The notes below the pieces were generated by a model that did no database searches, was not told the origin of the DNA, and saw only the letters and a program-made list of their open reading frames with translations. This document shows, piece by piece, positions 33,956 to 56,338 of a stretch of DNA of 64,000 nt. Origin of the DNA: Mytilus edulis (lineage: Eukaryota); contig NC_092349.1 of the NCBI RefSeq assembly GCF_963676685.1, positions 75,392,001 to 75,456,000 of the forward strand. The letters are read 5' to 3'. The position numbers were made by a program, and so were the translations under genes. Each line of letters opens with the position of its first letter. Within the stretch, counting starts at the first letter, position 1.

Positions 33956-34185
33956 TGAGATAAGGTGATTAAGGGGCATCGAACGATATCCACGGAACTC
34001 TTCGTGCTCCTTAAATATTGTTTAAATAACCAAAGAAATACTTGTCTAAGATCACAAATGTGTATAGTGTTACAGAAAACAACAATCAGGAAAGTTAGAA
34101 AAGTATATTTAACAATTTAACAAACGCTTAAAACCGTAAATTTAATATAATTATCCAACCAGTCAAGTAAACCAAAACAAACAAC

Positions 34186-35379
34186 ATGGCTGACATCAAC
34201 TCATATTCCGATGTGGTTTCACAACCAGCATATCATAAACATACCAACTTTTACCCGATACATGAAGGTCTTGAGGAACTGAGGTCAGTAAAACCGGTAT
34301 TCATTTTAGAAACAGATTTATTTGGCAATACAGAACTCCAACAAAAAGACTTCTTACAACATGAAGAAGTCTACAAAAGTATCGGTTCAGAGGTACCCAG
34401 ATTCCAAATGAAAGGGTTACAAAGAGTCTAGGGAATGTGGCGTATTTATCTTGCACAAGAACTAGCAAGAGATCACCTCCTTACAAGGGTGTATCTATAC
34501 GTAATAAACTTTTAACAGTATATGATAAAAACCCAAGAATCCCTCAAGCTGAGCAACACCCAGAATACCTCCGAGTACGTGTGTCCAACATTCCACTATC
34601 AGCTGAGGACGGTATGATCTTCTCGTTCTTCCAATCTAATGGCGTAGTCGTTACTAGCTATTTCAGAGAGAGAGTGAGAATAGATGGCGAAATGACTGAC
34701 TGCCAATCTGGAGACAGAATCTTTTATGTCGAACCATTGGAGGGCACACTACCAAGATTCACAAGGATAAGCAAGTACAATGCCAAAATATATTACAAAG
34801 GCCAAATCTACATAAATGCACATATATCTTGTCAAAAATGCCTGAAAAAGGGACACAAACAAGACAAATGCCAAAACGATTGGGTTTGTAATGAATGTGG
34901 AAAAGAAGGGCATAAAGCAAAAGAATGCCAAACTCCTAGTACAGCAACACCAGGCAATGAAACTCCTAGTAAAGCAACATCAGACAATGAGGCAAATAAA
35001 ACAGATGACCAGTCTGATTCTAGTGAAAGTGAAAGTGGGGAAGAGACTGACATTGGTGATCATGTTGATCACAGTGAAACCCCACCTTCACAGTCCATAT
35101 TGCTACCTACAGAAGCAATAACAGCAACAACAACAGCTATCAGTAAAGTCATCACAGAAATTGATCCTGATTTACAGGAGAAAAAAAACAAGAAAAAAGA
35201 AAAACAAAGACAAAACAAAAAACAAGCCAAAAGTTGAATCAAAGGGACCAATTGACAAATTCATTGTAAACCCTGAATCAACAACACCAGTACACAAACA
35301 GGGGAAAAGACCAGCAACAACCCCTACAGATGAATATCACAACAGACAAACTGATTCAAGTAAATCTTCAAAAACATAG
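34186..35379 (+). pseudogene. LINE ORF1 (gag-like, two CCHC zinc knuckles), disrupted
   Basis: KGLQRV*GMWRIYL, RVRVSNIPLS, CQKCLKKGHKQDKC, CNECGKEGHKAKEC; one stop plus frameshifts. Confidence 0.88.
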
Positions 35380-37128
35380 ATACAAGAACAGTTTCCATAT
35401 TCCATTTCCTTTCAAAATATATTATCCACACAACAATGCCTAAGTCAATGGACACAATAATTTGTACTTGTACAAATATCTGTATATACTCCTATTTTAT
35501 ATATGTTTATAAAAAACAATTAAAAAAATATGTGGCAGTGTATGATACAATAACATTAGATTGTATATACTCTGCACAAAACAAATAGAGCAATAAAGTC
35601 TATATAGATTGTTGTCAATATAATATGTATAGATCAATGAAACGACTCCTTTTTTTCATATGAAATAACTAGTATAAACGGACTGCAATAAATTTTGATA
35701 CTCTGCAATTTTCATTCTCAAAATGAATTGTTTTGAATCTTTGCAAAATGGCTAAAAATCTAGGTTTTTTGGCCTGAAATCTAGGAGTTTTAACAACTTC
35801 ATATCAATTTGCATCATGTCGGAAAATCAATTTCTTTTTGTTTAGAAAAAATGCATCAAGCTTTTAAATACTACAGCTTAATTCAATTTTTCTTAGAAAT
35901 AAAGTCAATTCTCATCATCCTTCAAATGCATCCTGCAATAAAAAAAAAGAAACGAATAATATACATACTAAAATTTTAGAATTCCTTTTTGTAAGTTGTA
36001 TTTTATATTTTGAATTATACAATAAACTAAATTTTTAGCCTACTGAAATTTTACATTCAAAACTCAGTGCTAAATTTTTAGCTTTCAAAGATTCTCATTT
36101 CAATGATATTGGCTCGAGATTTAACCGTTTGAGCAATTTGGACAAGAACAGTTAATACATGAACAAAAATGCTAAATTTTTAGTAAAAAAAAATATAACA
36201 TTTTGCTCGAAAAATTGCAATTTGTTTTTATTGTAATATAGTTAATTGTAAATTATAAGCCTGGTACCTTTGAAAAGTATCTATATCCGATTTTTGAGAT
36301 GATATTTAGCGACTTTAGCAATCATATTTTACTTTGATAAGGAAAATCACGCATAAGAGTTTACATTTAAGTTTTGAATCAAGCACTTAAACGTACCGCA
36401 TTTCTCACAAAATTCATAAATTGGCATCAACATGCTTAATAGTCTATCATCAACTTATACTTATCGACATTTGGTGGGATTTTATTGCTCAATCTGTAGG
36501 TATGATGTGGTTTGAGAAGGTTTGGTATTCTTTTCGATATTTCACGTTTTTTGACACGATATTGTCGATGTTTTCGCCAATTGAATTCTGAGTTTGCCTT
36601 GGGCATCAGCAGCCTGTTACTATACTATAACTATATTATGTCCCAGACAGTATTTATATTGTACAGATTGGGAACAAACCCCCTGTATGGTGATTATACC
36701 TTGTGGTATACTTATTTCCTTTAAATAAAATTCTTTTATATTATGAGAACACAAACAGTTGATGTTTTATCATATTACAAAGAGTCACAACAACTTTGCG
36801 CCATTTAGTAATCATAATCAGTCTTCGTCCTTCAAATCCTTTAATTACATCCAATGAATTTAGGAAATGTCAAACGTTTACGTGATTTTTACATTTAAAG
36901 CGCCTTTATGATTAACATTTTGTCTCTAAAATGCTTGAATAATTGTATCCCTTTTAGATTATTTTGTTCTTTAATAATGTTACAGCTTCAATCAAAAACA
37001 ATTTTTTTTTTTAAACTGTTCCGAAGTTAAAAGATTCTCTAGACACATATTTATGATATATCAGCTATGCAAGTTCACCATTCTAGTTTGAATTAAGAAC
37101 ATTTAACTTAAGCTTCTTATCAGTATGC

Positions 37129-37263
37129 ATAGGCGGATCCAGGGGGGCCTGTGGGCCCGCCCCCACCCTTTCGTGGAAAAAATTTGATTGATTATATAGG
37201 GAATCACTGAAGCATGACTGGAGCCCCCCCCCCTTTTATGAAAAGTTCTGGATCCGCCACTGG
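37129..37263. mobile_element. Short GC-rich MITE
   Basis: ggcggatccagg ... ctggatccgccactg inverted ends; relatives at ~2235, 57506, 57665, 60470 and 61326. Confidence 0.65.
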
Positions 37264-37867
37264 TATGCATATGAAGATCAATACTAGAGATTAGTGAGAA
37301 ACAAAACATAGAAAACAATGTGCACTTAAGTCATGTAAACAGTGCATATGTATACGATATCAGTTTGTGTTATAGTGCGTAACAAGATTTTGTGAGGGAA
37401 TTCATTGTTTGCTATTATACCATGGTTCAGTTAAAGGCATTTTATGATAAGTCCAGAGACATGTATACTAAACTTATTTATATGTCTCTGGATAAGACCA
37501 ATAAAGTAATTAGAATGAACATTCTGGCATTATTTTAAAAAATGATTTAGCTATGAATGAATGTAACATTTGTCAAAAACATACCCTTTTAAAAAGAAAA
37601 TGTCTGTATAAAGTCAATAGTTTTGTTGACTTTTGAAGCCCAAACTTTGAATAGCTATATTTACTCTAATGAGTGATCTAAAAACTATATTCAGACAGAC
37701 ATATAGGTTAATGAAACTCTAGCAAAAAGTTGAATCAATTATTTTTTTGTTATGGTACGAAATTGCAGGTACGAAATGGTTATAGTACGAAATGACTACA
37801 ATTCACACAAATCCAACACTGTTTCTCTCCCCTTACATACACAACTCGGCCGATTCCGTACCTCCAG

Positions 37868-40800
37868 ATGGATCTACCATGTGTACAGGATAGAGAATCT
37901 CCGTCAATTTCGGAGGCAAACAGTCTCGATGACATATGCTTTCCGACTGATGAGCACGAAGATGATAATATTTCTTCGCCATCTAGTTCATTCTCCAGGC
38001 AAAACAAGAGACGCAGGTTAAGTCCCAGGTTAAACTATAACAATTACGTTTCAAACTCAAAGTATCATATTCCACAATTCGTGTCTTCTTGGAAGTTATA
38101 CCACGCTGAAAGATTACACATTTTTTATTCCAAGTGTTACACCGAAACTCCAAATGATTTACTTAATTTATTGGACAAGACAATTGAACCCTTTTCACAT
38201 CAACAAAAGTATTATATTGAAAGAATTAAATCATTTCTAAAATTTGAATCTTGTGAGCCTGGAGTATCCCGGAGCCGATCGAGTGTTTTTTTAAGGGACA
38301 TATACATCAGATTGGAACCTGTATTTGGTGAAATTATCAAGGAGCTTCGTTCTATCTTTGAAGGAGGATACAAGGCTAAAAATTCAAATCCTGATTATTA
38401 TCACATGTGAGTTCACAATGGTTTCAATAGTTTTGACTTTTAAAAGAAGGTGGCTACTTGTTTTTTTTTTTTTAGTGGGGAGTATAGGCCCCCAGCCTCT
38501 AAACTCATCAATTCATGATTCAAGATAAATGATGGGACACGATTGTATTTCATAAACCACTAATATATATATATTTTTGTTTTCAATTAAAAAATCAAAC
38601 GATGAATGCATATTTTTTTGTGTACCCATCTGTCCCTACTAGAAAACAAAAAATACATGTGTCCCTGCCCGTCCCTACTAAAAAATTGCACAGTTTCTTT
38701 TTTATTTTTATAATGTGGAAGTACAAAATATACATCAGCGGGGTTAAACGGCCACAAAAGAGACAGACAGATGAGGTTTCCGTGAATATGACTTTATGAG
38801 AAAACTAAACGGTCTAATTATTCTGCCGAATGGGAACGTGAAAGACCCTGGCTAGGCGATAGGGATGACGTAATGGTGTGTTCTGCATGCAAAGTTCACA
38901 GTGACACAAAAACTAATTCATTTGTAACTTGGTGTAAAATCTACAAATTAGATTGTGCTATTAAGCATGAGAGATCGAACAATCATGAAAAATCAGAAAA
39001 GACCAAGACTGAATTCAAGTCTACTTTATTTTCAAAAACTTGTAGAATAGCAAGAACAATCTTTGTGCCATGAACAAGTTCTAAAATGTTGTTAGCACAG
39101 TTTTAATTAAATGCATGTAGTTAACATATAAAACCTTTATTTCACTTGATTATTACTCCAAACTGTGTAGTAGTTGTAGTTCATGTAGTTGTACAATGTA
39201 GCTGAAATATTGCCCAAGTTGGTTTTAAACAACATTCAATCAACCAAAAAGTAGAGAATATACATGTAGTATATATAAATCTATACTCTCAGGGTGTAAG
39301 GTACATGTATTATAATTTCTTTTTTATCTTTTTAGAGATGTCTTGGCAAGTTATAGGGTATTTGAATTTATTGAAGAACTTTCAATCCTGCTAAAATTGT
39401 TTCAAGACAAATACAATCAATTGCAAGAGGTTGCTGAAACCTATTACATTCCTCTATGTCAAAGTTTTGCCCAGATGTGTCATTTAAAAGTGCAGTAAGT
39501 ATAAGTAGTATTAACATTTCATTTTTTTGCCATCACTTTGCGTCCGTCGTCTGTCCGTGTAGTCTTCCGTCCATCCCTCAAAATTTTACACATTTTAATT
39601 GTCTCCTCTGAAACCACTGGGCAATGGTATTTGGTATGATGTTGCATTATCATCAGTACATCTCAGTTTCATGCTTGTACTGAAGCCCTACCTCCTCAGT
39701 CAAAGTCTAGTGTCAGAAATTAATACACAGTTTCTACCTGTTCTATGTTAAATTTTCTGATTAGGTCAGTTCAAAAGAAACTCCTTATGATTGGTCAGTG
39801 CTTTTTTTTATCATGTTGCATTATCATCAGTACATCTCAGTTTCATGCTTGTACTGATGCCCCACCCCCTCAGTCAAAGTCTAGTGTCAGAAATTAATAC
39901 ACAGTTTCTACATGTTCTATGTTAAGTTTTCTGATTAGGTCAGTTCAATAGAAACTCCTTATGATTGATTAGTGCTATTTTTTATCATGTTGCATTATCA
40001 TCAGTACATCTCAGTTTCATGCAGGTTGTGAGGCCCTACCCCCTCAGTCATGGTCCACTGACTTTGAAATTGCCACAAAGTGTATGTTAAGTTTTGTGAT
40101 TAGGTCAGTTCAAAAGGAACTACTTATGATAGCTATAGGTTAGTGATATTTGGTATGATATTGCATTAGCGTGTGTACATTTCATTTTCATGCAGGTTGT
40201 GAGGTCCTGCTGAAAAAAACCCTCAAATTAAATATTCCCATTAATAGTGCAGTCAATATCAATCAAGGATTTGAAAATTGTATCAAAGGGGTTTTGTAAT
40301 TTTTTCACTCTTAAATATACACAGTCTAAAATAAACTTTGCTGCAAAGCAGGCGAGACAGATGTCTGTGATAACAGTTTATTCAATTATTGCTATCACAT
40401 TGTGTATTATTGGGATTTTTCATCTGATTCTGATGCCGTTTTTTTTTTTTTTTTTAATTTATTTCCTTATTGCAAGACTTTTCGGTAGTATACCAACTTC
40501 ATGTGAGTCTTACTATTTCAGAGATATAAGGGATCAGTTTTCAATTTTTGTATAATTGTATAATACTGGAATTTGGAATCAAGGTATACAATGGTATATA
40601 AACATTGGGTTTTAGTGTAGCAGATACTGGTAACTCTTATTTTACTGGTGACATCCCATTAGTCCGACAACCATTATTCCGACATCCCATTACTCCGACA
40701 GCCCATTACTCTGACAGCCCAATACTCCGACAGCCCATTATTCCGACAGCCCATTATTCCGACAGCCCAATACTCCGACAGCCCAATACTCCGACAACTC

Positions 40801-43800
40801 ATTATTCCGACAATGCATCGGTAATAGTTGTGTCGATTAATTATACTTTAAAAGAGCAACTCCGTCCTCGATAATATTGGTGGTTGTCCGTTTAGATTAG
40901 TTTAATTTTTCTCTTACAGGATATTTGTATCAGTGCCTTTGGTTAATACACATGCCTATTGTAAATCTTTACCCTCGTTACCCTTCAGTTTAATTCCTCA
41001 AAAGTTTTACTCGTGTCCGTCCGTTTGTCCGTCCAAAGGTTGGCTTCAGTCCTCCAACTTTAGTTTGTCTTCACCAAATGTTATGAAACTATACACAATG
41101 CTAATTATCACACAACACATATCAAGTTTAATTTGTTTTCGGCCTCTGTGTTCGTTCTAGAGTTATGCCCCTTATCAAATAAAAAAAATGCTACATTTTT
41201 CGTTTTCGTTCTCTAACTGAAGTAAATTTATCTCAACTAAATTCTATGAAATATAAAAGCATTACTTATTAGCACAAAACTCTGACCAAGTACACATTGG
41301 GTAGTGTCAATTGTATCGTTCTTCAGTTATGCCCCTTTATAACTGTATGAGGTAGGCAATCAGGGGCATCACATGTGCCCCCATGGACACATTCTCTGTT
41401 TCTTGTTTGAAGAGTCCGGGAATTTCAATTTTATTAAATTTTCGGCACGGGTTTCCATTGTCCTTATCAGCTGTTCTAATCCACGGTTTGTTTTTATTTC
41501 TGTTGATTGACACGATTTTTGTTATCATATCTTCGATTTCCTCACTTTTGAATCAACGGACTGGAGTTCCGCCACCATTTACCAAACACATATCAGCATG
41601 ATCTGAGTTGCCATCTTTGGTCGCAGCACTTTCAACCGTAAAAATAAGCAACGCTGGCTCCTCCAACGACACATACCTTGTGTTTGATGAATTGTTCGGG
41701 TACCATGTACCCGCGAAATATAGAGACAGTACACGTGCAATTATCATAACGGTCAATCACACATACGACATGACACTTGATTTACATGTATTATGAAGTG
41801 GAACTGATTTTGTATCACGAACCAATTAAACAATTCAATTTTATCATAAACATGATGAAGCAGTTGGAACAGGGGCAGGGCGGTTTGAAAATGTTTGAGA
41901 ATTAAAACTTTTTTCAATGCTTGGGGTGCAATTATAAAAACAAACGTAAATGAATAAAATGGCAGCCGATATTCTAAAAAGTTGCTGACGCACAACAACA
42001 TACACGCATACAATCACATGTACAACAGGGATAGCAAGAAGTCCCGTGTAGAAGAGGGTCATGACTAAGTGAGATAGTAAGATATATCAGACAAAGATGT
42101 GGTTTGAAAAAAACAGTACAAACACAAGTAAAATATAAAAGATTTTGATGTGTTCTCGATAGCTTTTATTAGGTCCTTCACCATCTTTGCGAAAGTTTCA
42201 AACAATATTCATGACTATGTTGTAGTTTGTAATTCGGAATCCTCTGGAAGTTTCAGGGTTGTATTTCTATTAGAAAATCAAGAGCCCCTTTAATTTTCCT
42301 GAAATAGATTGTATGCAGTGATCCTCCGATTATGCAAATTAGATGGCAACGACCAATTGATGGAAATCTTAGAAATGTTCTTGGGCATAGAACATGTGAC
42401 TTCTTAAAAAAAGCAATCAATGGTACGATGCATTGCATCTTCACCAAGATCATCCAATCAGCTTCAATCATTAAAATCGTGGGAAATTCGTCCTCCTCGT
42501 GGCATTTCCTCCAAGTTATCCCAACTGAAGGATGGCATATGTAACTCGCGGAAGAAGAGGAGGACACATTTTGATTTACAATGGTTTTAAGTACCAAAAA
42601 AACAAAACCAGACTCGATAAAGTACATTGGAGATGCTGGCGTCCTGCATGCAGAGCCCCACTTAGAACAAATTTGATCATTTTTGATGAGGAGGAACCAA
42701 ATATAGATGTACTTCATGTGAGTGTTATCCATTTTAACTTAACAAATCAACCAATATATCTATACTTCCAAACTTTTGGTGTAAAATCTGAACTCCTTAG
42801 TCCGATTATCTAAAATATCGATTGACAAACTCATATAAAGTGCCCAGAAATATTATAATCGCCAGAGTTCGCATACCCTTTATGTACATGTATCAATCAT
42901 TGAATTCGACGTTTTAACCGTCGATAAAACATGCGCATACCAATAACAAGTTGGTTCCTTCCACTTCATTTGAAGTCCTTTTAAAAAAAAATACTCGAGT
43001 TTAAGGTGGTATTGGAGAATTAACTTAAAATGATATAACTTTTTCATATTTTGCCAAAACGTAGTATAGATTGTGATATGTTCAAAAATAGAATAAAACT
43101 GATAGGTCACTGAGTATTTACTAAGGCTACAGGTCGTGGCACAATGACAAATTTTATATGGATTATACAGGGAAAAAAATCATTATGTGATAAGAACATG
43201 TAGAAGCTAAACTGAAATATATACTTGTAAAATAAAATACGAAAAGATAGCTTTTACAAAATGCTGTCAGAATATCAAAAGAAAAGATAGTGTTACCATA
43301 TTTTTTCCGATTAAAATGGTTAAAATAAGAACTGGTAAAATTTCATCTTGAATCTTTCAGAAAACTCTTTTTTTTAAGTTACCTCCCCTTAAAGTGTCAA
43401 TCTAAAAGTATTAAAAGTCAATCAAAAATAATCTATGCACGTAAATATATTAATGTTTATAAGTTTAAATCTTATTTTGTCATTCTTTTGAATGAAAACT
43501 TACATTATTTATCGACATTTCTCCTCAAATTTTGATCATTTAATTGAAAATCTGCACCTTAGATTCTTTGTTATTTACAATAATTGGCGAAAGACAACCA
43601 TACCACCTTAACCATTTAAAACTAAATATATCAAAACGCTTTTTAAATCTTATTATAGTTAGGAATCAGATTGTTAGCCAATATATAATCAAATTTGAAG
43701 TTTATCCTCGATATTGATATACTCTGTAAATATCGTCAATATCATTTCCAAAAATAGTAACATCGAGTCAATATCGTTTTCAAACTTACAATATGATCTA

Positions 43801-46800
43801 CATATGTAATATACAAATGTAGGAGTGTTCACTCAGTAAATACGTTATATGGACCTGTAAGATTATAATGAACCTCGGACTTTGTCCTAGGTCCATATAA
43901 TCTGAACAGGTCCATATATAATAAAGTACTGACCTGACCTCGTTTGAAGTCCATAATTAGTAAATATATCGAAGGATAGATACCTGTTTGACCGAATAGT
44001 AATATGAATTAGGAAAACGAAATAAATCCACTTAAATAAACTTTTGATCTTTTTATTTATCTTACTAAATGATGCTAGGAAACATAATTTAATATTAAAA
44101 AAATCTTTCCCAGGTTGGTCAACATGATCATCCAGAGGACCAAGATTTAATTCTGAGTTCCAATATAAGACGACAAATGACGGCTGCGGTGGCGGATAAC
44201 CCTTCCCTTACAGTTCGAGAGGCATATGACGATATAGCCCATCAGATCCCTCCAGCAGAAAGGGACAATATCCCTACGTATGACAGTGTAAGATCTTCTC
44301 TTGACCGAACAAGAAGAAGATACATGCCTGAGATACCAGCATCAATAAATGACGTCGACATTCGTGGACGCTGGCGCGTTACGCTAGATGGGAACCGTTT
44401 TCTCAGTAAATTGGATAATGGATGGGGCATTGCTGTTTTTTGCACGACACAAGCACTCCGTTGTTTGGGTCAATGCAACGACATCTATATTGATGCAACA
44501 TTTAAATCTACACCAGCTCCTTACAAGCAATTTCTAACCATCCATGGATTTTATAGGGACAGAGTTATACCTCTTGTATTTGCCTTGATGACTGACAGAA
44601 ATGTGGCTAATTATCGCCAAATTTTGGGACATCTGAAGAGGCGAAACTCCCGCCTAACAAATAACCAACTTACCCCTACCAATATAATATCTGATTTCGA
44701 AACCGCTATAATGACTGCTGCTCATACAGACTTTCCAAATTCTCGTATCATGGGCTGCTTTTTTCATTTTTGTAAAAGTGTCTGGAGGCGTGTACAAAAA
44801 GAGGGACTAAGACGCTCTTACAACAGAAGTGCAAGACTAAAAAGGTGCATTCGCAAGCTGATGGCCATAGCGTACCTTCCTGTAGCAGTTGTGCGACAGA
44901 ATTTTCATTTGTTTGTGCAAGATGTAGAAACCAGAAAACTATGCAGGAGATATCATGGTTTGAGAGATCTCCTGCTCTATTTTGAGCGCAATTATCTCAA
45001 TGGTCAGTTCCAACCGGCAACATGGAATGTGTTCAACAGGGATATGGACAATCGAACCAATAATCACGTTGAGGGTAAGTGGAAAATAAAATTACGTTGA
45101 CAAAGTAACAGACAATTAACTCTGTAATTTTAAACACATAATAACATCCTTATATCAAACCCAACTTTTGTTTCGGTGCGAAGGGTAAACTGTTTTTTAC
45201 CAGTCCGTCTATCCGTCAGAACATCATTATCAGTTTTTATCTTGTCATCGTAGCCCCTTTAAAACAACTTTAAAGATTTATTTACGATTGAAGATAAGGA
45301 ATTTGATTTCTCCACTTCTATCACACGTGATTTGAGGTAAATGTGCATTATTATCTGTATTTCATAATTTTTGACAATATAGGCACACCTCCAGAAAAGC
45401 ACACCTTATAAGTCGTGTCTAAATTTACAATTGTTTTAATTTTTAACAAGAATTGTTTTTTAAAAGCATGGGTATATAACGCACACTGTTAAAGTACATC
45501 CATTTTATATCAATCAAAATCTAAAAATACCACATTGCCAATACCAATTTAGCAACCACATGCACATATATAACCTTAAATTAGTGTAGAGCGAAGCAGT
45601 CCATAGCTTTTTAGAAAGCTAAAACTTAATTAAATTCTAATAACGTCCGGATCCACTACCGGAAGCTATCTCAGCCAATCAAATAAACGTATTTCCTAAT
45701 ATGCAAATCATAAAATAATCATTGACCAATAAGTTTGCGATTAAGAAACGTGTGGAGCACATTTTTAAACGGTCGTGTTTTGTTACTAGATAGTGCAATC
45801 ATATTACGCGCGGATTCACTGAGCAGAAGAAAATCGTGTGCTGTATGGTTATTGCCCATTTTCATTTAATAATCTATACTTGTTGTGTAACATGTACGTT
45901 GTAATATGAAAACTACATTTATCTTACGATCGGAGTACCCTATTTTTGCCGGATACTTGGTGCCATGGTTTCAGGTTTATTAACACAACGTCGTTTCAGG
46001 TTTTAACCACAGGTGGAATACAACCGTTGGGAGGAAACACCCCAATACTAGTATTTGGTATTTCATAAAAAAAGTGAAAAAAGAAGAACGCAGATCGGTT
46101 CTTGGTATACAGGCAAGTAATCGCGGTGACAATCCGCCTACCCGGAGGCTTAAATGTAGACGTTTACAGGCTAGAATTGATCGATCGCAGGCCACATACA
46201 GAGCTGGCAACAGAAACATTGACCAGTACTGGAATGCAATGATTTACACTGTTGCGCAATTTCAGTAAAATCGAAAATCATTACTTGAACTTTGTTTTGT
46301 TTTGTAATTTTATTGGGAAAAAGTAAACTCTAGAATATGTATGCCCCACCCCACCTCAGAAACATATGATTGACCAACGCCTTGATATTCCTGTTTTATG
46401 CTGCAGAAAACGAAGATGTAGGATATTATAGCGTGTTATTTCGAGCTATAGGGACATTTCGGACCATACAAAACTTGAACTCTTAATGTATCACAATGAG
46501 GTTCTTTTTCATTTTATATAATTGGTTAAAATCAATCGCGACAGAAAAAGATTCAAATTGAAGGTCAATACCTATAATATGTTGGTTTTACTAATTTTAT
46601 TGTCATTTGTTTGTTCTTGTGAAATATAAAAATGAGGAGATGTTGTAATTGCTTGCCATTGAGGCAACTATCCACCAAAGTTTAACTGAAGTTGATGTAG
46701 GATATATAGGAAACCATACTGCCTTAATCAATGAGAAAAATCCATACCTTATAGTCCGTTAAAAATGCCGGGGTTAAACATGTCTAAAGGAGCCAACCCT

Positions 46801-49800
46801 CCCAAACCTGGACTGGCATATGCAGTTGTGATATAGTACAAATATAAGAACAAACTATAAAAAACACTCTATAACTAATTCCAATTCTTCACATTTAAAT
46901 AAGAAGAGGTGGTATGATTGCCAATTGTCTGTATTTAAGTTAGCAAGGAACCTTTGCATCATGTTTCCGTATATATACGGAGTTTGAAGTTAATCCATAA
47001 GAAAATAATTCTGTACATTAATAATGGTAAAAACATACACGGAAGATTTCTGTATTCATACGTTATGGAATAGACCCTTAGACGGACGTTTTTACACTGA
47101 AACCGCCTAATATTTTTTTCTAAAGTGTCGCACAAATGGGTTGTCGGATTAATGGGCTGTCGGATTAATGGGCTGTCGGACTATTGGGTTGTCGGACTAA
47201 TAGGTTGTCGGAGCAATGGGCTGTCGGATGCCATGTATTGACAGGGTATCTTCTGTTTTGTCATACAATTTGAATATTACCGTAATTAATGATAATGCAG
47301 ATCTATATATTTTTTATTGAATTATTGCATTGACTACTGTCTTCTTACAAAATTTTTGATTCTATCATCAACTGTCTGAACTGTTGTGAAGTAAATTTCC
47401 CTGAATGACCAGCACTTTCATCACAAATTAATACCATATTCATCTTTTCAAGATATGGCAGACCCACAGAATGGATAAATTTAGCAGATCAAAAAATTGT
47501 ATCATCAGTACCAGACCTCTGTTTCTTCCAAAAAGGAAAGCAGTTGGATGAACTTGTACTCTCAAAATCTCAAATTTTAGTGTCAGTTGTAGAGGTAAGT
47601 TGCTTTAGAACAAAAAATGTAAACTGCTATTCCCTTTTACAGTATGTGACACAAATTGAAAAAAATGTTCCTTATTGCATACAAATAATAAATGTGGTCA
47701 GTATTCTGTTTTTCAATATTTATAGCTTTACCTGCAAAAGGAATCACAAACCTTCCCTGTTTATTAGCTCACCTGGCTAAAAGCCAGGGTGAGCTTTTGT
47801 CATCACTTTGCGTCCGTCATCCGTCTGTAAACTTTTTCAAAAATCTTTTCCTCTGAACCCACTGGGCCAATCTGAACCAAAGTTGGTCTGAATCATCCAT
47901 AAGGTGTCTACTTTCAAAATTGTATCCGCTGACCCCTGCTCTCCAAAAATGGCAGCCATTACTATAAATAGAACATAGGGGTAAAATGCATAGAAATTTC
48001 TATAAATGGCAAAAAAGCTTAATTTTTCAGTAATATGGGTTCAAATTTGATCTGTATCCTCATCATTTAGAGTTGTTTAACATATGATACAGGTTTTTCC
48101 GAAAAATTTATACTTTTGCCAATTTTGCTAAATATGCAAATTAGGCTTATTTGACAAAAATTCAATGACAGATCTTCTCCTCTGAAACCATTTGGCCAAT
48201 TGGAACCAAACTTGATGTGGATGGTCCTTGGGTGGTCCCTTTCAAGATGGACAATTTGTGATTTCACGGTGCTTTGCAAACTGAATAATTTGCAATGTGT
48301 ATTAATATGTTTGTAAGATTGGCTTTATACATGTTATACATGTAAATGTGATTTAGCTTATAAATCCACGTTCACATCCCAAAAATGAGTTCCATTGATT
48401 TTTGTGTTAATTTTTCAGTTGCCTACAATGCTCTGGTGGTACATGTATAATAATGAATGTACTAGACACCATTGACATTTTTTTTAATAACTTTGCAAGG
48501 GCTTTTTCTTGTTCAATGATTTTGTGTTTTTAATAAAAAAAAAAAAAAAAAAGAAAGAGTTCATTCAGTAATGGACTACACTACATTTATCTGACATTTT
48601 GTCTGAACTTTTAACTAGATATTCATTGCAAAATATTTTTATGGCCCAGAGACCAAATGTTGGTGGGCGGGAATCATAATCATTAACCCTGTCTTTTCTT
48701 CTGTTATTGTATCCCTGCATCTGTCCACACTGTAAGCACTAGCAAATTTAGTTCTCATAAGAGTTGGATAAAATTTGTACATAGCCTTCTGTTCTATGAT
48801 AACTCAAGCCAGTTTGAAGATGAGTTCTGTTCGTGATATTTTGTAAGAGTTGTGCCCTTAAAGACTTTGTAAATTGGCAATATAGCCTTGTCAGCATTCA
48901 TTTTGGATTTGAATGCAATTTATACATATGCTTTAGCTCAATAATATCTCAAAAAAGTATGAAGAAGAGTCGTGATAGTAAATTTATGTAGCATTTATGT
49001 TCCTTAAACAACTTTTGAAAGTTGGAAAATAAATATTTGCAATGGGGGGGGGGGGGGGGGGGGTGTGGGGGGGGGGGGGTGTGACATTGGAGCACTGTTT
49101 TTTTATGATATAATTTTTAATAGGTGAAAAAGGATTCAAGGCAAAAGTGCGAGGAACCACCAATTAAAATCGGAAAATGCTCAGATGAAAAAGATGAAGG
49201 TTCCTGCAGACCAGAAATATTGAAGGATTTAACTGAGTCTGTGCTAGGACAGCATGCAGGAGAACTTTTGTTAGAAATTCGAAGAAAAGATCATGTAACA
49301 AAGGTAGAAAATGGAGTTAAAAAGTTTATGAAACCGGGAATGGTTGTTGATGGGACTAAGGTAATTTATTGCAGAATTAGAACATTAATAAACAAGTAAT
49401 ATACATGTAAATTAATATCCATGCCATCTATTGATGTATTAATGATATTATTGAGCATGCATGTATATTTATTAGTCCCCTACTGGCAAAGGCTCTGTGT
49501 CCATCTGTCCGTCCGTCAGATTTTAGGTTTTACAGATGTTTCCCAAACCCTTTAGGACAGCAGTTTCATATTTGTTATGTAAATAATTCAAGGGCTGTTA
49601 CAAATGAAGGTCACATTTTGTTCAGGTCTAATAATTTTTCACAGTGTTATGGCTGACGGTCCGTCTGGCAGATCCTGAGTTTTCCAGATTTTTTTAAACC
49701 CTTTGAGATGTCAGCTTCATATTTGATATGTAAATACATCATGGGCTGTTACAGTTCAAGTTTGGATTTTGCTCTTGTCCGATAATTTTTCACAGAGATA

Positions 49801-50852
49801 TGACCCTTGAACTAAAGAAAATTCATAAAATTTTAATGTTTTCCAGACTTTTTTCCCCAACCCTTTAAGAGATGAGCTTCATATTTGGTTTGTTATAGTT
49901 CAAGTTCACATTTTGTTCCAGTCTGATATTTTTTCACAGAGTTATGGCTGTCTGTCTGTCTGATTTAAAGTTTTGCAGACTTTTTTCCCAAACCCTTTTA
50001 AATATCGGCTTCATATTTGGTGTGTAAATACATCATGGACTGTTACAGTTCAAGTTCCCATTTTGTTCCAGTCTGATAAGTCAAGGCCCTTGAACTTCTT
50101 TCTGTCTGATAAAATGATTTTTTTTGCAGCGACACATAGGGATCACTCTCCGTCATCTTGCGTCTGCGTCATACTACTGTAGATTCATTTTTATTTGTGG
50201 TATACCAATTTCTGGTTATGTTGTGCAATTCTAGTATAGTGTTGATTTGCGAAAATATGTGCAATGTGGGGGACATTGGAACTCTGTTCTTTTATAAAAT
50301 TTAATTTGACAGCATTCTAATTCCACAAACATGACAAATTGAAATATAATATACATATGATGTCAAGTTTAACTTGTCATACGGCCACAGAAATACAGTA
50401 TATCATACAAATCTCTAAGCATGTGACAACCATACAATATATTTCTCCCCCCGGATTTCTGAAACATCTGAGATACAAGGTTAATACAAAGTAATTATAT
50501 ATTCCTGTGGTTGTTTTCAAGAATTTTTTAGTCAGCGTAGGAATACAGCCTTACAGGATCTCTTAAACCTCTACCTATTTTACCATAACTAGCTACTTTT
50601 GTTTTCTGAAACAGGTTTGTGAGGAGACATCAGGTTCTGAGAAACATTATTATTTTTATTTTTCAGGTTTATTTCACAATTCTTAAAATGTCTGATAACC
50701 ATATAGAAGAACTTGAAAAGAAGAAGAAATATGATGACAGTATGGATGAGGCAATTATTTATTATGCAAAACCGTTGGACCTTATTTTTAAAGAAGATCG
50801 GGACATTTTGATAGACAGCTTTATGATGTTAAATAACATTGAGTTCAGTTAA
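37868..50852 (+). CDS. Intact 5-exon gene, 420 aa, putative nuclear PD-(D/E)xK (restriction-endonuclease-fold) protein
   Basis: Exons 37868-38406, 39336-39494, 47453-47594, 49124-49360, 50667-50852; all GT-AG, phases 2,2,0,0 match, 1263 nt open. Acidic/Ser N-terminus, KRRR NLS, then VPDLCF...VSVVEVKK...VLGQHAGELLLE...GMVVDGTKVYF. Gene structure is seen directly; nuclease call is motif inference. Confidence 0.8.
38590..39075 (+). mobile_element. hAT-type transposon remnant (N-terminal TTF-like zinc finger) in intron 1
   Basis: WERERPWL...VMVCSACK...NSFVTWC...AIKHERSNNH resembles the W..PWL / CxxC / H..S..H finger of hAT/ZNF862-like transposases. Confidence 0.55.
39520..40370. repeat. Helentron/HINE-type non-autonomous element with ~180-bp tandem repeats
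   Basis: GTCC-type microsatellite head (cgtccgtcgtctgtccg) followed by three or more units of atgttgcattatcatcagtacatctcagtttcatgc. Confidence 0.7.
42532..46268 (+). CDS. FLYWCH-MULE DDE transposase, 3 exons, 471 aa, apparently intact
   Basis: Exons 42532-42717, 44114-45074, 46000-46268 (phases 0 and 1). FLYWCH: LIYNGFKY..WRC...C..|..HDH; catalytic YIDATF, ISDFE, CFFH, RTNNHVEGFN, HP..W.FI. Confidence 0.92.
43005..43607. mobile_element. TTAA-flanked MITE (Kolobok-like) in transposase intron 1
   Basis: TTAA|GGTGGTAT ... ATACCACC|TTAA. Confidence 0.7.
47760..48260. repeat. Helentron/HINE-type non-autonomous element fragment
   Basis: ttagctcacctgg..ccagggtgagct terminal hairpin, gtccgtc microsatellite, repeated tcttctcctctgaaacc unit. 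Confidence 0.7.
49470..50290. repeat. Helentron/HINE-type element with internal tandem repeats
   Basis: tctgtccgtccgtc head; repeated aaaccctt..gcttcatatttg..ggctgttacagttcaagtt units; end gcaatgtggggacattgg. Confidence 0.65.
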
Positions 50853-51789
50853 TGCCATAATCCGCAAATTTACAAGCTTCTTCCACCAGTAAAACTGGTC
50901 GCCATGATATAACTGAATCAAAGCTTTACAGGCTGTAAAAGCAATTGCTGCCATGTTAATGTTTTGGGGACTTTTTTTTATCATTGACAATGTTACATGC
51001 ACATTTGGAGATCAGTTTTATATTTATTATACAATATAAATTGAATTAATATATTAAGTACAGATTTTAGAATTATCTAATAATTTGTAAATTTTATTAA
51101 ATTAAAGCAACTGAAAGCATTTCATTAATGAAGTATTTGATCAAAATTTGTAAGATTTGATTGACACCAAAGTCTTAAGACATTATTGTTGGCCTTCCTA
51201 TCATAAGTCGCACAAAGATTTAAAGAAGGTGTGCTATAGTTATATATACATATTTAATAATCTGTGTTTCAATGTACCACAATATCAATATGTGCGCTAT
51301 GTCGTATAATCCTGTAAACAGAAAAGCAATAGCACTCTACTATATTTATATAGATATGCAAATTAATTACATCGCCATTTCCACACACCTGTATACAAAA
51401 TGTAAACATATCAGTTTGATCTATTTATTTTATACCTGTTTTTATATACAGATAATTATCCTTTTTTAGTTGTAGCCTCAAAAGTTTCCATTCATGTATT
51501 AATTATGTCTTCATTTTTTTTAATTATTTGCATCAAGATCTCCGTGTCCTGCTAAATATCTGTATAATTAAAGTCAAGCCCCGTAAACAAAATAGTTGTA
51601 ATATCTGTACTGTTATCATAAGCATGCGAAAGTATTTGATAATAATCTCCCGTTGTTTTTGCTACTCGTTTATTAATGTTTTTATTTCTGAAAAGTGTTT
51701 TAAAAATATAAAATTAACGAAAAATAAATTCAATACTCACCAATTTAGAAAGATATATATTACATCCATCACATTTATATACTTCTATA

Positions 51790-52143
51790 AATAAATTTGG
51801 TGTATTTACTGTCTTCTGATTGGTTAAAATTATTAGTTTTATTTTCAATGTTGTCAATTTTGATGGCGACACGCCCACTCTGACGTTGTGTATTCATACG
51901 CCAACATGTGTGTATGTTGTTATTGTGAATATAAATAATATAAAAAGTTCTTTGAGCCTTATTTTTTATAGAAATTTATTTATAATGAATGGCAATAATT
52001 TATTTTGATTTTATTGAACCATAAAACTAATTTTTGACTCTTCACATTTTACATAATCCGCTTCGCGGATTATTCAATGTGAAGAGTCAAAAATTAGTTT
52101 TATGGTTCAATAAATTCAAAATAGATAATAGCCATTCATTAAA
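51790..52143. mobile_element. Palindromic non-autonomous element (Crypton-like architecture) in the LINE spacer
   Basis: ctgattggtt head; ~75-bp-arm near-perfect palindrome 51983-52141 centred on ccgc-ttc-gcgg. Family assignment is tentative. Confidence 0.55.
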
Positions 52144-52467
52144 TGTACGGTATATTAGTCTATTTAAAGTTAATCCTCGTGCGAATTAATCGTTTTACAT
52201 GTGAAGGTCAATATATTTTACCAGCTAACAATTCTAAATATAGAAATAGGTGGAAACCTATTAAAGTCGGTCAATATGAAATTATAACTATGTGTGTAAA
52301 TGTAATTATACTTAGTCTAGCAACTCATACAGTCAAAGCTAAAACTGTCATTAGAGATGCACATATGATTGTATTTTTATCTCTAAATTCTGTATATATT
52401 TGTATGTATATTCTGCTTTTTATATTTGAAATACATGTATCGAATACTTTTTTAAAAACAAACCAAG

Positions 52468-55400
52468 ATGTCACTTAATCCATTGCATATATGTTCTTTA
52501 AATTGTCAGGGGTTAAGAAAATAGGAAAAAAGAATTAGACTAAAAGAATGGATAAAACAACAAAAATGCAACATAATATTTTTACAAGAAACACATTTTT
52601 CGAACAATTCAATAGATAAAGAATTTACGGGCGATTTATATCATAGTTTTGGAAGCACACAATCAAGAGGTGTTTCGATTTATATCAACCAAAAAATGAA
52701 ATATGAAATCATAGATAAATATGTAGATCAAGACGGAAGAATTGTTTTAATCAACACAGAAATAGATAAAAATATATTTACCTTTGTAAACCTTTATGCC
52801 CCAAACACATGTAAAGATAGAAATATATTCTTTAAAAAAGCTTTAAGTGTCATTGAAAAATATAGCCTTGGTATAATTATCATAGGCGGTGATATGAATG
52901 AAACGCTTAATATAAAAGATAGAAAAAGTAATAGAAAAAATCAACAAAAAATAAAAAATAAGACAAATGGGCTAAAAACTCTGATAAAAAAACTAAAAGT
53001 TATAGATATATGGAGAGCAATAAATCCAAATAAAACGCAATATACCTGGAAAAGAAAAAATAATGAAGTAGCTAGTAGAATTGATTATTTTCTAGTTAGT
53101 CAAGATGTGAGACCAAGAGTACTGATATACGACCTGCTACTATTCAATATACAGATCACTTAGCGATTTCACTTAAAATTAATCATTGTCAAGGGAACAA
53201 AGGAAAGGGATACTTCAAATTAAACAACAGTATTCTTAATGACAAATCATACAAAATAAAAATAAATACTTTGATAGATAAATATGAAAAATTAAGAAAT
53301 AAAAAAAGTCTAGCAATCGTGTGGGATCTCTTTAAAATAGAAGTAAGAGAGAAAACTATAGAACATTGTAAATTAAAAGCTAAACAGAAAAGAGACGAAA
53401 TTACAAAACTCGAACAAAAACTTAAACTTTTGAATGAAATTCATGATAACAACCTGGATGGAAAAAATAATAATTTGCCAAATATAATAGATTCAATAAA
53501 TAAAACAGAAGAAACGCTACAAACTCTATATTCAGATAAAATAAAAGGGGCACAAATAAGATCACGAGTTAAATGGATAGAAGAGGGCGAAAAAAATACA
53601 AAATATTTCTTGGGATTAGAAAAATCAAGACAAACAAGGAAAAACATTACTGCTATAAGGGACAGTAAAGGAGAAATAACAGAAGATCAAGGCAAAATAT
53701 TAGAAACGGAGAGAAATTATTATGTCAATTTATATAAGTCAACTAACCCTGATTTAAGAGAAATTGAAAATTATATTGAAAAAACTAAAATAAATTACAA
53801 ATTAAGTACACAAGAAGGTAATGAAATTGACGGCAACCTGACAATAGAGGAATGTACACAATCTGTTTTTAAAATGAAACTTAATAAAACACCAGGTATC
53901 GATGGTCTCTCAATTGAATTTTATAGAGCTTTCTGGTCCAACTTACAAAACTTTGCTGTAGATGTTTTTAATAATTGCTATAAAAAAAAAGAATTGACAA
54001 ATTCTCAGAAACTAGGATTAATTACCCTTATATACAAGAAAAACGACCCATTAAATTTAGATAATTATAGACCAATTACCTTACTAAATGTAGATACCAA
54101 AATTATAGCATACTCTCTTGCACAAAGACTGAAACCAATATTGCATAAAATCATTCATAGTGATCAAAACGGTTATGTAAAAAACAGATTTATTGGATTT
54201 AATATTAGACAAATCCAAGATATTATAGATTATTCGGAAAAATTCAATGTAGATGGTCTGGAGCAATCCTATTTTTAGACTTCACAAAAGCATTTGACTC
54301 GCTAGAATGGGAATTTATGTATTGTTCTTTATAGAAATTTGGTTTCCAGGAATCTCTTTTGAGGTGGATAAATACGTTATACACAGATATAAAGGGTTGC
54401 ATATTAAATAATGGCTGGATTTCAAGACCCTTCAACATTGAGCGCGGAATCCGTCAAGGGTGTCCCGCGAGTTCTATAATTTTTGTAATTGCTGTTGAAA
54501 TTTTAGCTAGTAGATTAAGACAAAATAAAAGTTTTAAAGGTTTTCAAATTAAACTAGATAATAAAACCCATACCTTAAAATTAAGCCAGCTGGCAGACGA
54601 CACCACTTTATTTTTAAATTCAAAACAAGAAGTGTCATTAACTCTGAATATTATAGAAATTTTTGGATCACTTTCAGGCCTAAAGCTTAACCGAAATAAA
54701 ACAGAAGGAATATGGCTCGGCAATTTAAAGTCCTGCAAAGATAAAGTTGAAAACATTAATTTTACACAAAAACCTATAAAAGTTTTGGGAATATACTTTG
54801 GACTTAATAAAAATGAGTGTAAAAAAATAAACTTGCAACGACAATACGAAAAATCTGAAAAAAATAATTAAAGATTGGAATAAAAGAAATTTAACTATGT
54901 TAGGTATGATAACTCTTGTTAAATCATTAATCTTACCGAACATTACTTACGTTGCATCTGTAACCGAAATTGATAACGAATACCTAGCAAAATTTAAAAA
55001 ATTGATATACAGTTTTATATGGAATAATAAATCAGAAAAAGTTAAAAGGGATATAATAAGTAAAAATTACCATGATGGCGGGCTTAAAATGATAAACATA
55101 GATAAATATCTAGAAGCGATAAATATTAAATGGGGTAAAAAAACTCATCGATAATGAAGATCTATCACCCAATTGGAAAGTCTTACCAAACTTTTATTTT
55201 GATAAATTTGGACAAGAATTCCTTATATTTAAAATGAATTTCAACAATATTAATTTGGTCTATAAACTGAAAGAACTAATTCCACAATTTTACTTAAGAA
55301 TAATCATATCATGGATAAATTCAAAATCTGAAAAAGAATCAGATCATCTATCATATAAACAAATTACACAGCAGCTTATATGGGGCAATACAAATATCAA

Positions 55401-56298
55401 ATTAAACGGTAAATGTCTCATTTTCAAAAACTGGATAAACATTAAAATTCTTTTTTTAAATGACATTATTGATAATGAAGGAAAATTTAATCAAAACATG
55501 GTCTTAGATAAACTTTCCTGTCATGCTAACTGGTTTTCAGAATATTCTAAATTAATGAAAGCAATACCAAAACAGTGGTTACAAGAGCTAACTAAAGAAG
55601 AATCAATAAAAACAAAAGTTGCCATTGACTCCGAATATAAATTTAAAGATAAAAAAGGGAAAATGGTATCACTTAAAAACATTTCCTCTAAAGACATTTA
55701 CATCTCCCTCTTAAATAGATATTATGAAAAACCAATAGGATTTCAAAAATGGGACAACATATTTATCTTGGAAAACAACACAAACAAAAGACAACTAATG
55801 CTAAATTATATCTTTTATTATTTACAAGATAATAAATTCAAAATGTTAAGATGGAAATTTCTGCACTACATTTTACCAACCAAACAATTACTTTTCTCTT
55901 GGAAAATAACTAAAACTCCGCTATGTAATATTTGTGATGTCATCGAAGATTATGAGCACTACTTTTTAACATGCAAATTTCTGAAATCATTTTGGGATCA
56001 AATAAAACTATTACTTGATAAACTTAAAATAGGACATCATATCATATCAATTAAATCACTTTTGTACGGATACAAAATAAACGATACAAGTTATTACAGT
56101 ATTAATGATTTAATAACAATTATTCTTTTTACTGTATACAAAGGATACTATATATCCGAACAAAAAACAAAACAAATTAATATGTTTGAAATTTTCAAAA
56201 AAGAATTTCTTCAATATCACGAAATATTGATAAATAAAGGAGGCAAATATGAAAAATTCCATAATCTGGTTGCAGCAAAAATTAAATTAATTTCATAA
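52468..56298 (+). pseudogene. LINE ORF2 (APE endonuclease + reverse transcriptase + C-terminal Cys/His motif), disrupted
   Basis: SLNCQGL, FLQETH, NLYAPN, GGDMN, SRIDYF, TDH; KTPGIDG, NYRPITLLNVD, RGIRQGCP, QLADDT; CNICDVIEDYEHYFLTC; several stops and frameshifts. Confidence 0.93.
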
Positions 56299-56338
56299 AT
56301 TAGAATTTATAATACATCATGTTATCATATTTCTTTTC

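Follow-up and report, generated by a model that had tools for sequence, protein, structure and literature searches.

A five-exon gene for an uncharacterized protein lies on the + strand of a 64,000-nucleotide stretch of Mytilus edulis DNA (hereafter the window, C6:75392001-75456000 of the 1.37-Gb assembly that was also used for genome searches). Positions below without a sequence name are those of the window. The gene sits inside a 15,558-bp insert that splits a long interspersed nuclear element (LINE), and the insert begins with the terminus of a DNA transposon family that is here named R. The best full explanation, to which we assign a probability of roughly 0.7, is that a conserved host gene encoding a PD-(D/E)xK protein was integrated into the LINE as cargo of R.

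The listing of open reading frames (ORFs) for the window shows the gene as fragments only, and its exon limits were read from the DNA at the junctions. Exons were translated one by one in frame and then compared with database proteins; folding and searching used these exon references or identical database proteins. All five translations are exact substrings of the M. edulis RefSeq protein XP_071180520.1 ('uncharacterized protein isoform X1', 420 aa; P0053), which served as the reference, and the exons sum to 1263 nt, or 420 codons plus a stop codon. This exact identity bears out the original prediction, made from the letters of the DNA, of a canonically spliced five-exon gene for a 420-aa protein. 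RefSeq also lists two shorter isoforms, X2, which skips residues 51-180, and X3, which ends after exon 2.

Exon 1 (37868-38406, donor GTGAGT) encodes residues 1-179 plus 2 nt, matches reference residues 1-179, and carries the acidic disordered N-terminus, a KRRR motif that resembles a nuclear localisation signal and the beginning of a helical domain. Exon 2 (39336-39494, acceptor AG, donor GTAAGT) encodes residues 180-233 in part, matches 181-232, and specifies a helix bearing E214. Exon 3 (47453-47594, AG/GTAAGT) matches residues 234-280 and contains the S-x-P-D254 strand and the strand with E280 at its end. Exon 4 (49124-49360, AG/GTAATT) matches residues 281-359 and contains K282, an acidic linker and the GQHAGELLL helix. 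Exon 5 (50667-50852 including the stop codon, acceptor AG at 50665-50666) matches residues 360-420 and supplies the final strands and a C-terminal helix with R404. All five exons are on the + strand. The four GT-AG introns, which have consistent phases, measure 929, 7958, 1529 and 1306 bp.

The sequence motifs reported for the protein are all found, at residues 47-50 (KRRR), 213 (AETYY), 252 (VPDLCF), 279 (VEVKK, which crosses the exon 3/exon 4 junction) and 323 (QHAGEL). Orthologues of 418-421 aa exist in M. galloprovincialis (XP_076080824.1, 99% identity), M. trossulus (98%) and M. californianus (96%). The orthologous and additional loci in these species are LOC143051780, LOC143051866 and LOC143082237 in M. 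galloprovincialis, LOC134692114 in M. trossulus and LOC127736777 in M. californianus. Judged by sequence, this appears to be a conserved and ordinary-looking five-exon host gene that is already annotated as uncharacterized.

Searches with DNA from the two flanks of the insert return one LINE in many copies, which are 90-98% identical. In copies without the insert, for example C14:65324134-65326578, the base equivalent to window position 35676 is joined directly to that of 51235. An intact LINE reads ...CTAGTATAGTTAT... at this junction, with TATA present once, whereas the window reads ...CTAGTATA, insert, TATAGTTAT..., with the 4 bp TATA duplicated at 35673-35676 and 51235-51238. The insert itself (35677-51234, + strand) contains the whole gene. 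To its left is the 5' part of the host LINE (33970-35676, + strand), which includes ORF1 with a CCHC knuckle (34437-35237) and is 96.6-97% identical to another LINE copy (L040). To its right is the 3' part (51235-56300, + strand), where ORF2 is spread over four ORFs (52696-56298). The gene therefore does lie between ORF1 and ORF2, as had been claimed. Its proposed arrival at the DNA level, after the LINE had inserted, agrees with the clean split of the LINE, the 4-bp duplication and the retained introns.

The host LINE copy is 1-5% diverged from its sister copies, and it has decayed in the way originally described, with ORF2 in four pieces and a miniature inverted-repeat transposable element (MITE) inserted in its 3' part. 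This 354-bp element at 51789-52142 has many genome-wide copies with about 98% identity that match on both strands, and it looks like a palindromic MITE.

Two simpler origins for the arrangement can be set aside or nearly so. A retrocopy, or transduction of the gene by the LINE, is excluded by the four retained introns and by the lack of an A-rich or repeat tail at 51234. An assembly error that joined a LINE copy to an unrelated locus is scarcely credible. Both junctions of the insert do fall at repeats (the LINE and R), as such an error might produce, but both halves of one LINE stand in register around the insert with a clean 4-bp duplication, and an M. edulis RefSeq gene model spans the region.

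The R repeat occupies the insert's initial 1.3 kb (35677-36984). Genome-wide, 31 R termini all begin at the same base and have different flanks. Eighteen of them form nine convergent pairs, spaced 7-126 kb apart, that are located on C11 (two), C9, C10, C8, C12, C13 and C14 (two). The pair at C11:41439963-41447409, referred to below as the chromosome 11 copy, delimits an element of 7,447 bp with perfect 69-bp inverted repeats and CCAT on both sides. Three larger elements have target duplications that were read by pattern searches printing the flanking bases: TAAG for C11:40796894-40866851 (70 kb), GTAT for C9:81110982-81158658 (47.7 kb) and TTAT for C10:82378032-82418748 (40.7 kb). In total, the 4-bp duplications match in four of the six testable pairs, a proportion far beyond chance for 4-mers, and the verified copies span 7.4-70 kb.

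The left subterminal region of R recurs in mirrored form at the right end of the 70-kb copy. The elements that run from C10:82378032 onward and from C12:10709287 downward have 25 kb or more in common at 98% identity, beginning from the inverted repeat, and their left flanks differ. R is thus a low-copy family of inverted-repeat, cut-and-paste DNA transposons that generate 4-bp duplications and include very large copies. These giant elements, which are newly described here, look like cargo-type inverted-repeat DNA transposons. The region shared by the C10 and C12 elements includes tandem arrays of units of about 0.5-1 kb, and no ORF in it exceeds 124 aa. The C12 pair has different 4-mers at its two flanks (TAAG versus CAAT), and this mismatch points to a rearrangement.

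In the window, the insert opens with the left terminal inverted repeat of R (35677-35745, + strand), the same 69 bp that occurs in inverted orientation at the two ends of the chromosome 11 copy. The left subterminal region as a whole (35677-36984, + strand) is 75-97% identical to the R ends L038, L039, L041 and L042. The chromosome 11 copy also carries part of the gene. Its cargo is a duplicate, with about 98% identity, of the promoter region, exon 1 and most of intron 1 (36960-39181 in the window, + strand) and nothing further of the gene. Exon 1 of this duplicate has a 15-bp in-frame duplication and differs from the window by 0.7% substitutions, compared to 1.7-2.2% in the flanks.

A different route could have brought the same DNA into the LINE. 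The 15.5-kb piece may have been inserted by DNA repair or by replication template switching, that is, by end joining or a microhomology-driven segmental duplication, with the R terminus being merely the point where the copied tract began. We regard this as unlikely. The insert starts exactly at base 1 of the inverted repeat, a starting point common to all 31 termini, and such a start would be improbable by chance. The duplication is also 4 bp long, which is the length found at R elements elsewhere.

Several observations nevertheless weigh against integration of the gene as R cargo, and some of them are what a repair event would be expected to leave. A search of the window for a right inverted repeat was negative, the insert ending with ...GGTGTGC, so that integration of exactly 15.5 kb by a transposase would have to be deduced from its left end together with the 4-bp duplication. 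A related sequence on C4 is similar to the last 7 bases across the right junction, which allows for a microhomology-mediated junction. This C4 relative continues TAT-GTT, close to TATAGTT, the sequence of the LINE at that point. In addition, the bases ahead of one R copy (L041) are AACTAGTATA-like and similar to the LINE target, which again hints at microhomology. The insert is also a mosaic: the subterminal region of the chromosome 11 copy is only about 70% identical to that of the window, yet the gene segments are about 98% identical, and this disparity implies a mosaic history. Finally, two of the six testable pairs of R termini lack matching duplications, and no transposase was found in the approximately 60 kb of R sequence read.

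Integration as cargo of R, followed by loss of one end, remains the explanation that we prefer. The gene, together with its promoter and introns, would have been captured as cargo between R ends. Because the TATA duplication is like those of other R copies, it is most likely that an R transposase integrated the gene-bearing element into the LINE copy and duplicated TATA in doing so. The right end may later have been lost through a one-sided deletion that started at a transposase cut after an aborted excision, and this deletion would immobilise the copy. As it stands, the window copy is an R derivative with a left repeat only and is not an intact element. The gene had originally been described as riding inside a retrotransposon. 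It does reside within a LINE, and its carrier is a transposon, but that carrier is the inverted-repeat DNA element R nested in the LINE.

Some transposons with terminal inverted repeats carry host sequences, such as Pack-MULEs, the foldback-flanked composite elements of Drosophila and fractured Ac in maize. R resembles these systems in holding host DNA between inverted repeats, in moving at the DNA level so that introns are kept, and in generating target duplications. The family also includes a deletion derivative, namely the chromosome 11 copy, and the copy in the window has lost an end. However, the cargo of R in this case is not a fragment but a complete, conserved five-exon gene that appears to be functional as judged from its sequence. 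R also differs in duplicating 4 bp and in having copies of up to 40-70 kb.

Gene capture by Helitrons offers another comparison, since in both cases the left end is defined and the content downstream of it varies. A Helitron or other rolling-circle origin was rejected for this insert. Its ends (AACGG... and ...GTGTGC) do not conform to TC...CTRR, TATA is duplicated rather than there being a simple A/T insertion, and other copies have 69-bp inverted repeats.

A more radical alternative is that the nuclease-fold protein is the transposase of R, or an accessory nuclease of it, and is therefore truly selfish. Its gene is located inside an R-derived element, a fragment of it is present in a second R element, and there is no other transposase in the R sequence read. 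The remaining evidence makes this proposal highly improbable. Exons 3 and 4 are single-copy in the M. edulis genome, and no other R pair overlaps a paralogue from the same protein family. The members of this family are old multi-exon genes that have diverged and whose orthologues occur across species. The 25 kb read from the C10 element likewise contains no nuclease-fold gene.

The structure of the protein was predicted with AlphaFold2 from a 99%-identical protein (P0015) and an alignment of 29 family sequences. The full-length model has a predicted local distance difference test score (pLDDT) of 78 and a predicted template-modelling score (pTM) of 0.78, with residues 1-63 and 285-306 disordered. 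The first of these regions corresponds to the acidic N-terminus that was expected to be disordered. A second model was made for a natural 290-aa isoform that lacks most of the N-terminal domain. Foldseek comparisons of the whole model with the Protein Data Bank (PDB) yield low template-modelling scores of 0.25-0.34. These low values reflect the orientation of the domains, and VIA-align, which searched about 48,000 PDB representatives, was therefore needed.

The top VIA-align matches to the full-length model are human mitoribosome chains s3 (Z 11.9) and 5 (Z 10.6). We take chains s/s3 to be mL65 and chain 5 to be mL37. Next are the N-terminal nuclease domains of BpuSI (Z 8.1) and DrdV (Z 8.0). 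Re-alignment of the Foldseek list with VIA-align gave Z-scores that reach 12.9 for mL65 and lie at 11.2-11.9 for mL37, over 222-234 residues; the two comparisons together align 218-234 residues. The best matches to the 290-aa isoform are mL65 (9.6), BpuSI (9.5), mL37 (8.8) and DrdV (8.8), followed by the putative restriction endonuclease 9y1l (8.0), Hjc resolvases (7.2-7.3) and HsdR (7.2). McrC, Can2, NucS, Cas4, Vsr, NucC and SduA appear lower in the list. Nearly all of the top non-helical matches to this isoform are PD-(D/E)xK proteins, and the list is almost purely composed of them.

In the model, D254 immediately precedes strand 255-259, and E280-V-K282 falls at the end of strand 274-280. 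This predicted placement is canonical for the PD-(D/E)xK fold. The proposal of a restriction-endonuclease fold, with PD...(D/E)xK followed by a helix bearing Q, thus holds up in the AlphaFold models and structure matches that had been suggested as its check. We consider a PD-(D/E)xK (restriction-endonuclease-like) fold, with its alpha-beta-beta-beta-alpha-beta core, to be a well-supported prediction for this protein. The mussel protein is probably a metal-dependent nuclease or a nucleic-acid-binding protein that acts in the nucleus.

Searches by sequence give little further guidance. Neither the exons, the protein nor the family profile has a meaningful match in Pfam, PADLOC or PDB sequences, and this bivalve family has no Pfam model. 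Foldseek comparison with viral structures yields no significant match, only weak similarity to Cas4 and PD-(D/E)xK phage proteins. In the ESM Atlas, the only clusters are of hypothetical proteins from molluscs (143, 71 and 56 members). There, the nearest neighbour with a Pfam name is HSDR_N, whose score of 0.79 makes it a lead only.

Whether such a protein cleaves nucleic acids is a separate question, and the same evidence points in two directions. E214, D254, E280, K282 and Q323 are intact in this gene and in its four-species orthologues, and catalysis by the XP_071180520.1 protein is plausible. Of the 29 family members, those from oysters included, 24 retain D, 22 retain E and 24 retain K. 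Distant oyster members retain D, E, K, Q and H, which suggests that the ancestral protein was catalytic. On the other side of the balance, about a third of the paralogues lack D, E or K, each of these residues being lost in 5-7 of 29 members. The residues that are invariant across the family (S251, H324, T363, H371 and R404) are not those of the classical triad. Furthermore, a review presents mL65 and mL37, which match best in structure, as repurposed endonucleases with a present role as ribosomal proteins (PMC8998825).

These observations give appreciable weight, though less than even odds, to the view that the mussel protein is not an enzyme. Like mL37 and mL65, it could have a repurposed endonuclease fold and serve solely to bind partners, either nucleic acid or protein. 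Against this view stand the residues retained in this gene, its orthologues and the distant oyster members.

Comparisons with well-characterized relatives place these similarities in context. Restriction enzymes of type IIG/IIL and type I (BpuSI 3S1S, DrdV 7LO5, HsdR 3H1T/2W00; Pfam HSDR_N) share the core fold with the mussel protein over 116-138 aligned residues, with Z-scores of 5.7-9.5 and root-mean-square deviations of 3.2-4.5 Å. As in their nuclease domains, the mussel protein places D...ExK on consecutive strands that are followed by a helix with a conserved Q. Unlike restriction enzymes, however, the mussel gene is eukaryotic and contains introns, is not fused to a methyltransferase or helicase, and has no detectable sequence similarity to them. 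The protein also adds a helical N-domain, an acidic tail and KRRR.

Mitoribosomal mL65 (MRPS30) and mL37 are the best structural matches to the whole ordered part of the protein, residues ~55-420, and have in common with it a helical N-terminal part and an endonuclease-like core. In the ribosome, these two proteins form a pseudo-dimer (PMC8998825). The mussel protein differs from both in being only 6-10% identical, in retaining D/E/K and in belonging to a lineage-specific family with many paralogues. None of the 29 family members matches Pfam PDCD9 (PF07147) at E values of up to 10, and a family profile compared with PDB sequences finds no mitoribosomal chain. By inspection only, the acidic, KRRR-bearing N-terminus does not look like a mitochondrial presequence.

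A likeness to Crinkler-type restriction endonuclease effectors had been suggested as well. The resemblance extends to a eukaryotic protein with a C-terminal domain of restriction-endonuclease fold. Compared by sequence domains, the mussel protein has no Crinkler header domain and no Pfam match at all, and no link is apparent at this level.

Single-sequence and profile searches identify about 40 proteins related to the mussel protein, all of which are uncharacterized and come from Mytilus species or oysters (Saccostrea, Ostrea and Crassostrea). A search of 1.8 billion representatives with exon 1 retrieves 14 proteins only, all of them members of the same family. The protein thus defines a bivalve-restricted PD-(D/E)xK family, and its fold assignment is new here. 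A literature search found no description of this protein family or of giant bivalve transposons.

Exon 1 or exon 4 has matches of 28-60% identity at 20 or more loci of the M. edulis genome, and at least eight loci match both exons on the same strand, 3-30 kb apart. Exon 3 is unique. These matches are diverged multi-exon paralogues, 25-40% identical, with orthologues across Mytilus species and are not a burst of transposon copies. None of the paralogous loci lies inside an R element among the R elements checked. For these reasons, the original view that the gene might belong to a transposon-spread family of defence effectors is not supported. Similarly, no evidence was found in the window for a bivalve immune-gene cluster.

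Some paralogous proteins are complete on Logan contigs that barely exceed the coding sequence, such as one of 355 aa (P0019) on a 1108-bp contig. Because family genes have introns of several kilobases, these short contigs are best read as spliced transcripts and would indirectly support that the family is transcribed. One exon-1-like family pseudogene, with three stop codons, is present at positions 1504-2281 of C8:16261216-16264416. According to tblastn, it is located about 250 bp from a fragment resembling the transposase of a Mutator-like element (MULE), in an order unlike that of the window. This proximity may be a coincidence or may be a second association between the family and a MULE.

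The gene and its present location appear to differ in age. Its 96% protein identity to the M. californianus orthologue implies that the gene is old. M. galloprovincialis has three near-identical annotated loci of this gene on two chromosomes. Together with the low divergence of the host LINE and the chromosome 11 duplicate, which is about 2% diverged, these loci suggest from sequence comparison that an old gene was recently relocated or duplicated.

Several other features occupy the insert and its surroundings. The great length of intron 2 (7958 bp) is due to a nested MULE transposon at 40650-47228, which has long inverted ends (40650-40818 and 47126-47228) built from 16-bp subrepeats. Within it are an ORF with a FLYWCH zinc finger (42532-42813, Pfam FLYWCH 9e-8) and a transposase ORF (44177-45100, Pfam MULE 7e-13). 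Intron 1 contains a 66-aa ORF (38873-39070) that is also present in the chromosome 11 copy. It has a weak match, below the Pfam threshold, to the C17orf113 probable zinc finger (zf-C17orf113, E = 7e-4) and could be an unused exon or what remains of another element. A 69-bp stretch at 50916-50984, in the gene's 3' flank, matches a very abundant repeat with 93-96% identity in dozens of loci. Farther away, fragments of a reverse-transcriptase ORF from another LINE copy occur at 11254-12474. An Rfam scan of window positions 33000-58000 found nothing.

No animals are known in which gene presence/absence variation is more extreme than in mussels, and the authors of that work wrote that the part played in it by transposable elements had yet to be elucidated (PMC7653742). 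The locus described here offers a checkable case, in which a whole conserved multi-exon gene, within a transposon-derived block, has landed in a young LINE. Sister R elements of tens of kilobases carry clean target duplications. A broader proposal, which we advance tentatively and hold to be doubtful in its full extent, is that R is an undescribed giant (7-70 kb) cargo-carrying inverted-repeat transposon that moves complete, intron-containing, functional host genes between chromosomes. The nuclease-fold gene would be one such cargo, and movements of this type would contribute to gene presence/absence variation in Mytilus. The locus in any case illustrates one route by which entire genes may travel within mussel genomes. 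Should individuals prove polymorphic for R elements, such elements would provide a mechanism for both moving and losing genes. The bivalve protein family, in turn, may show what proteins like mL37 and mL65 resembled while their catalytic residues were still kept.

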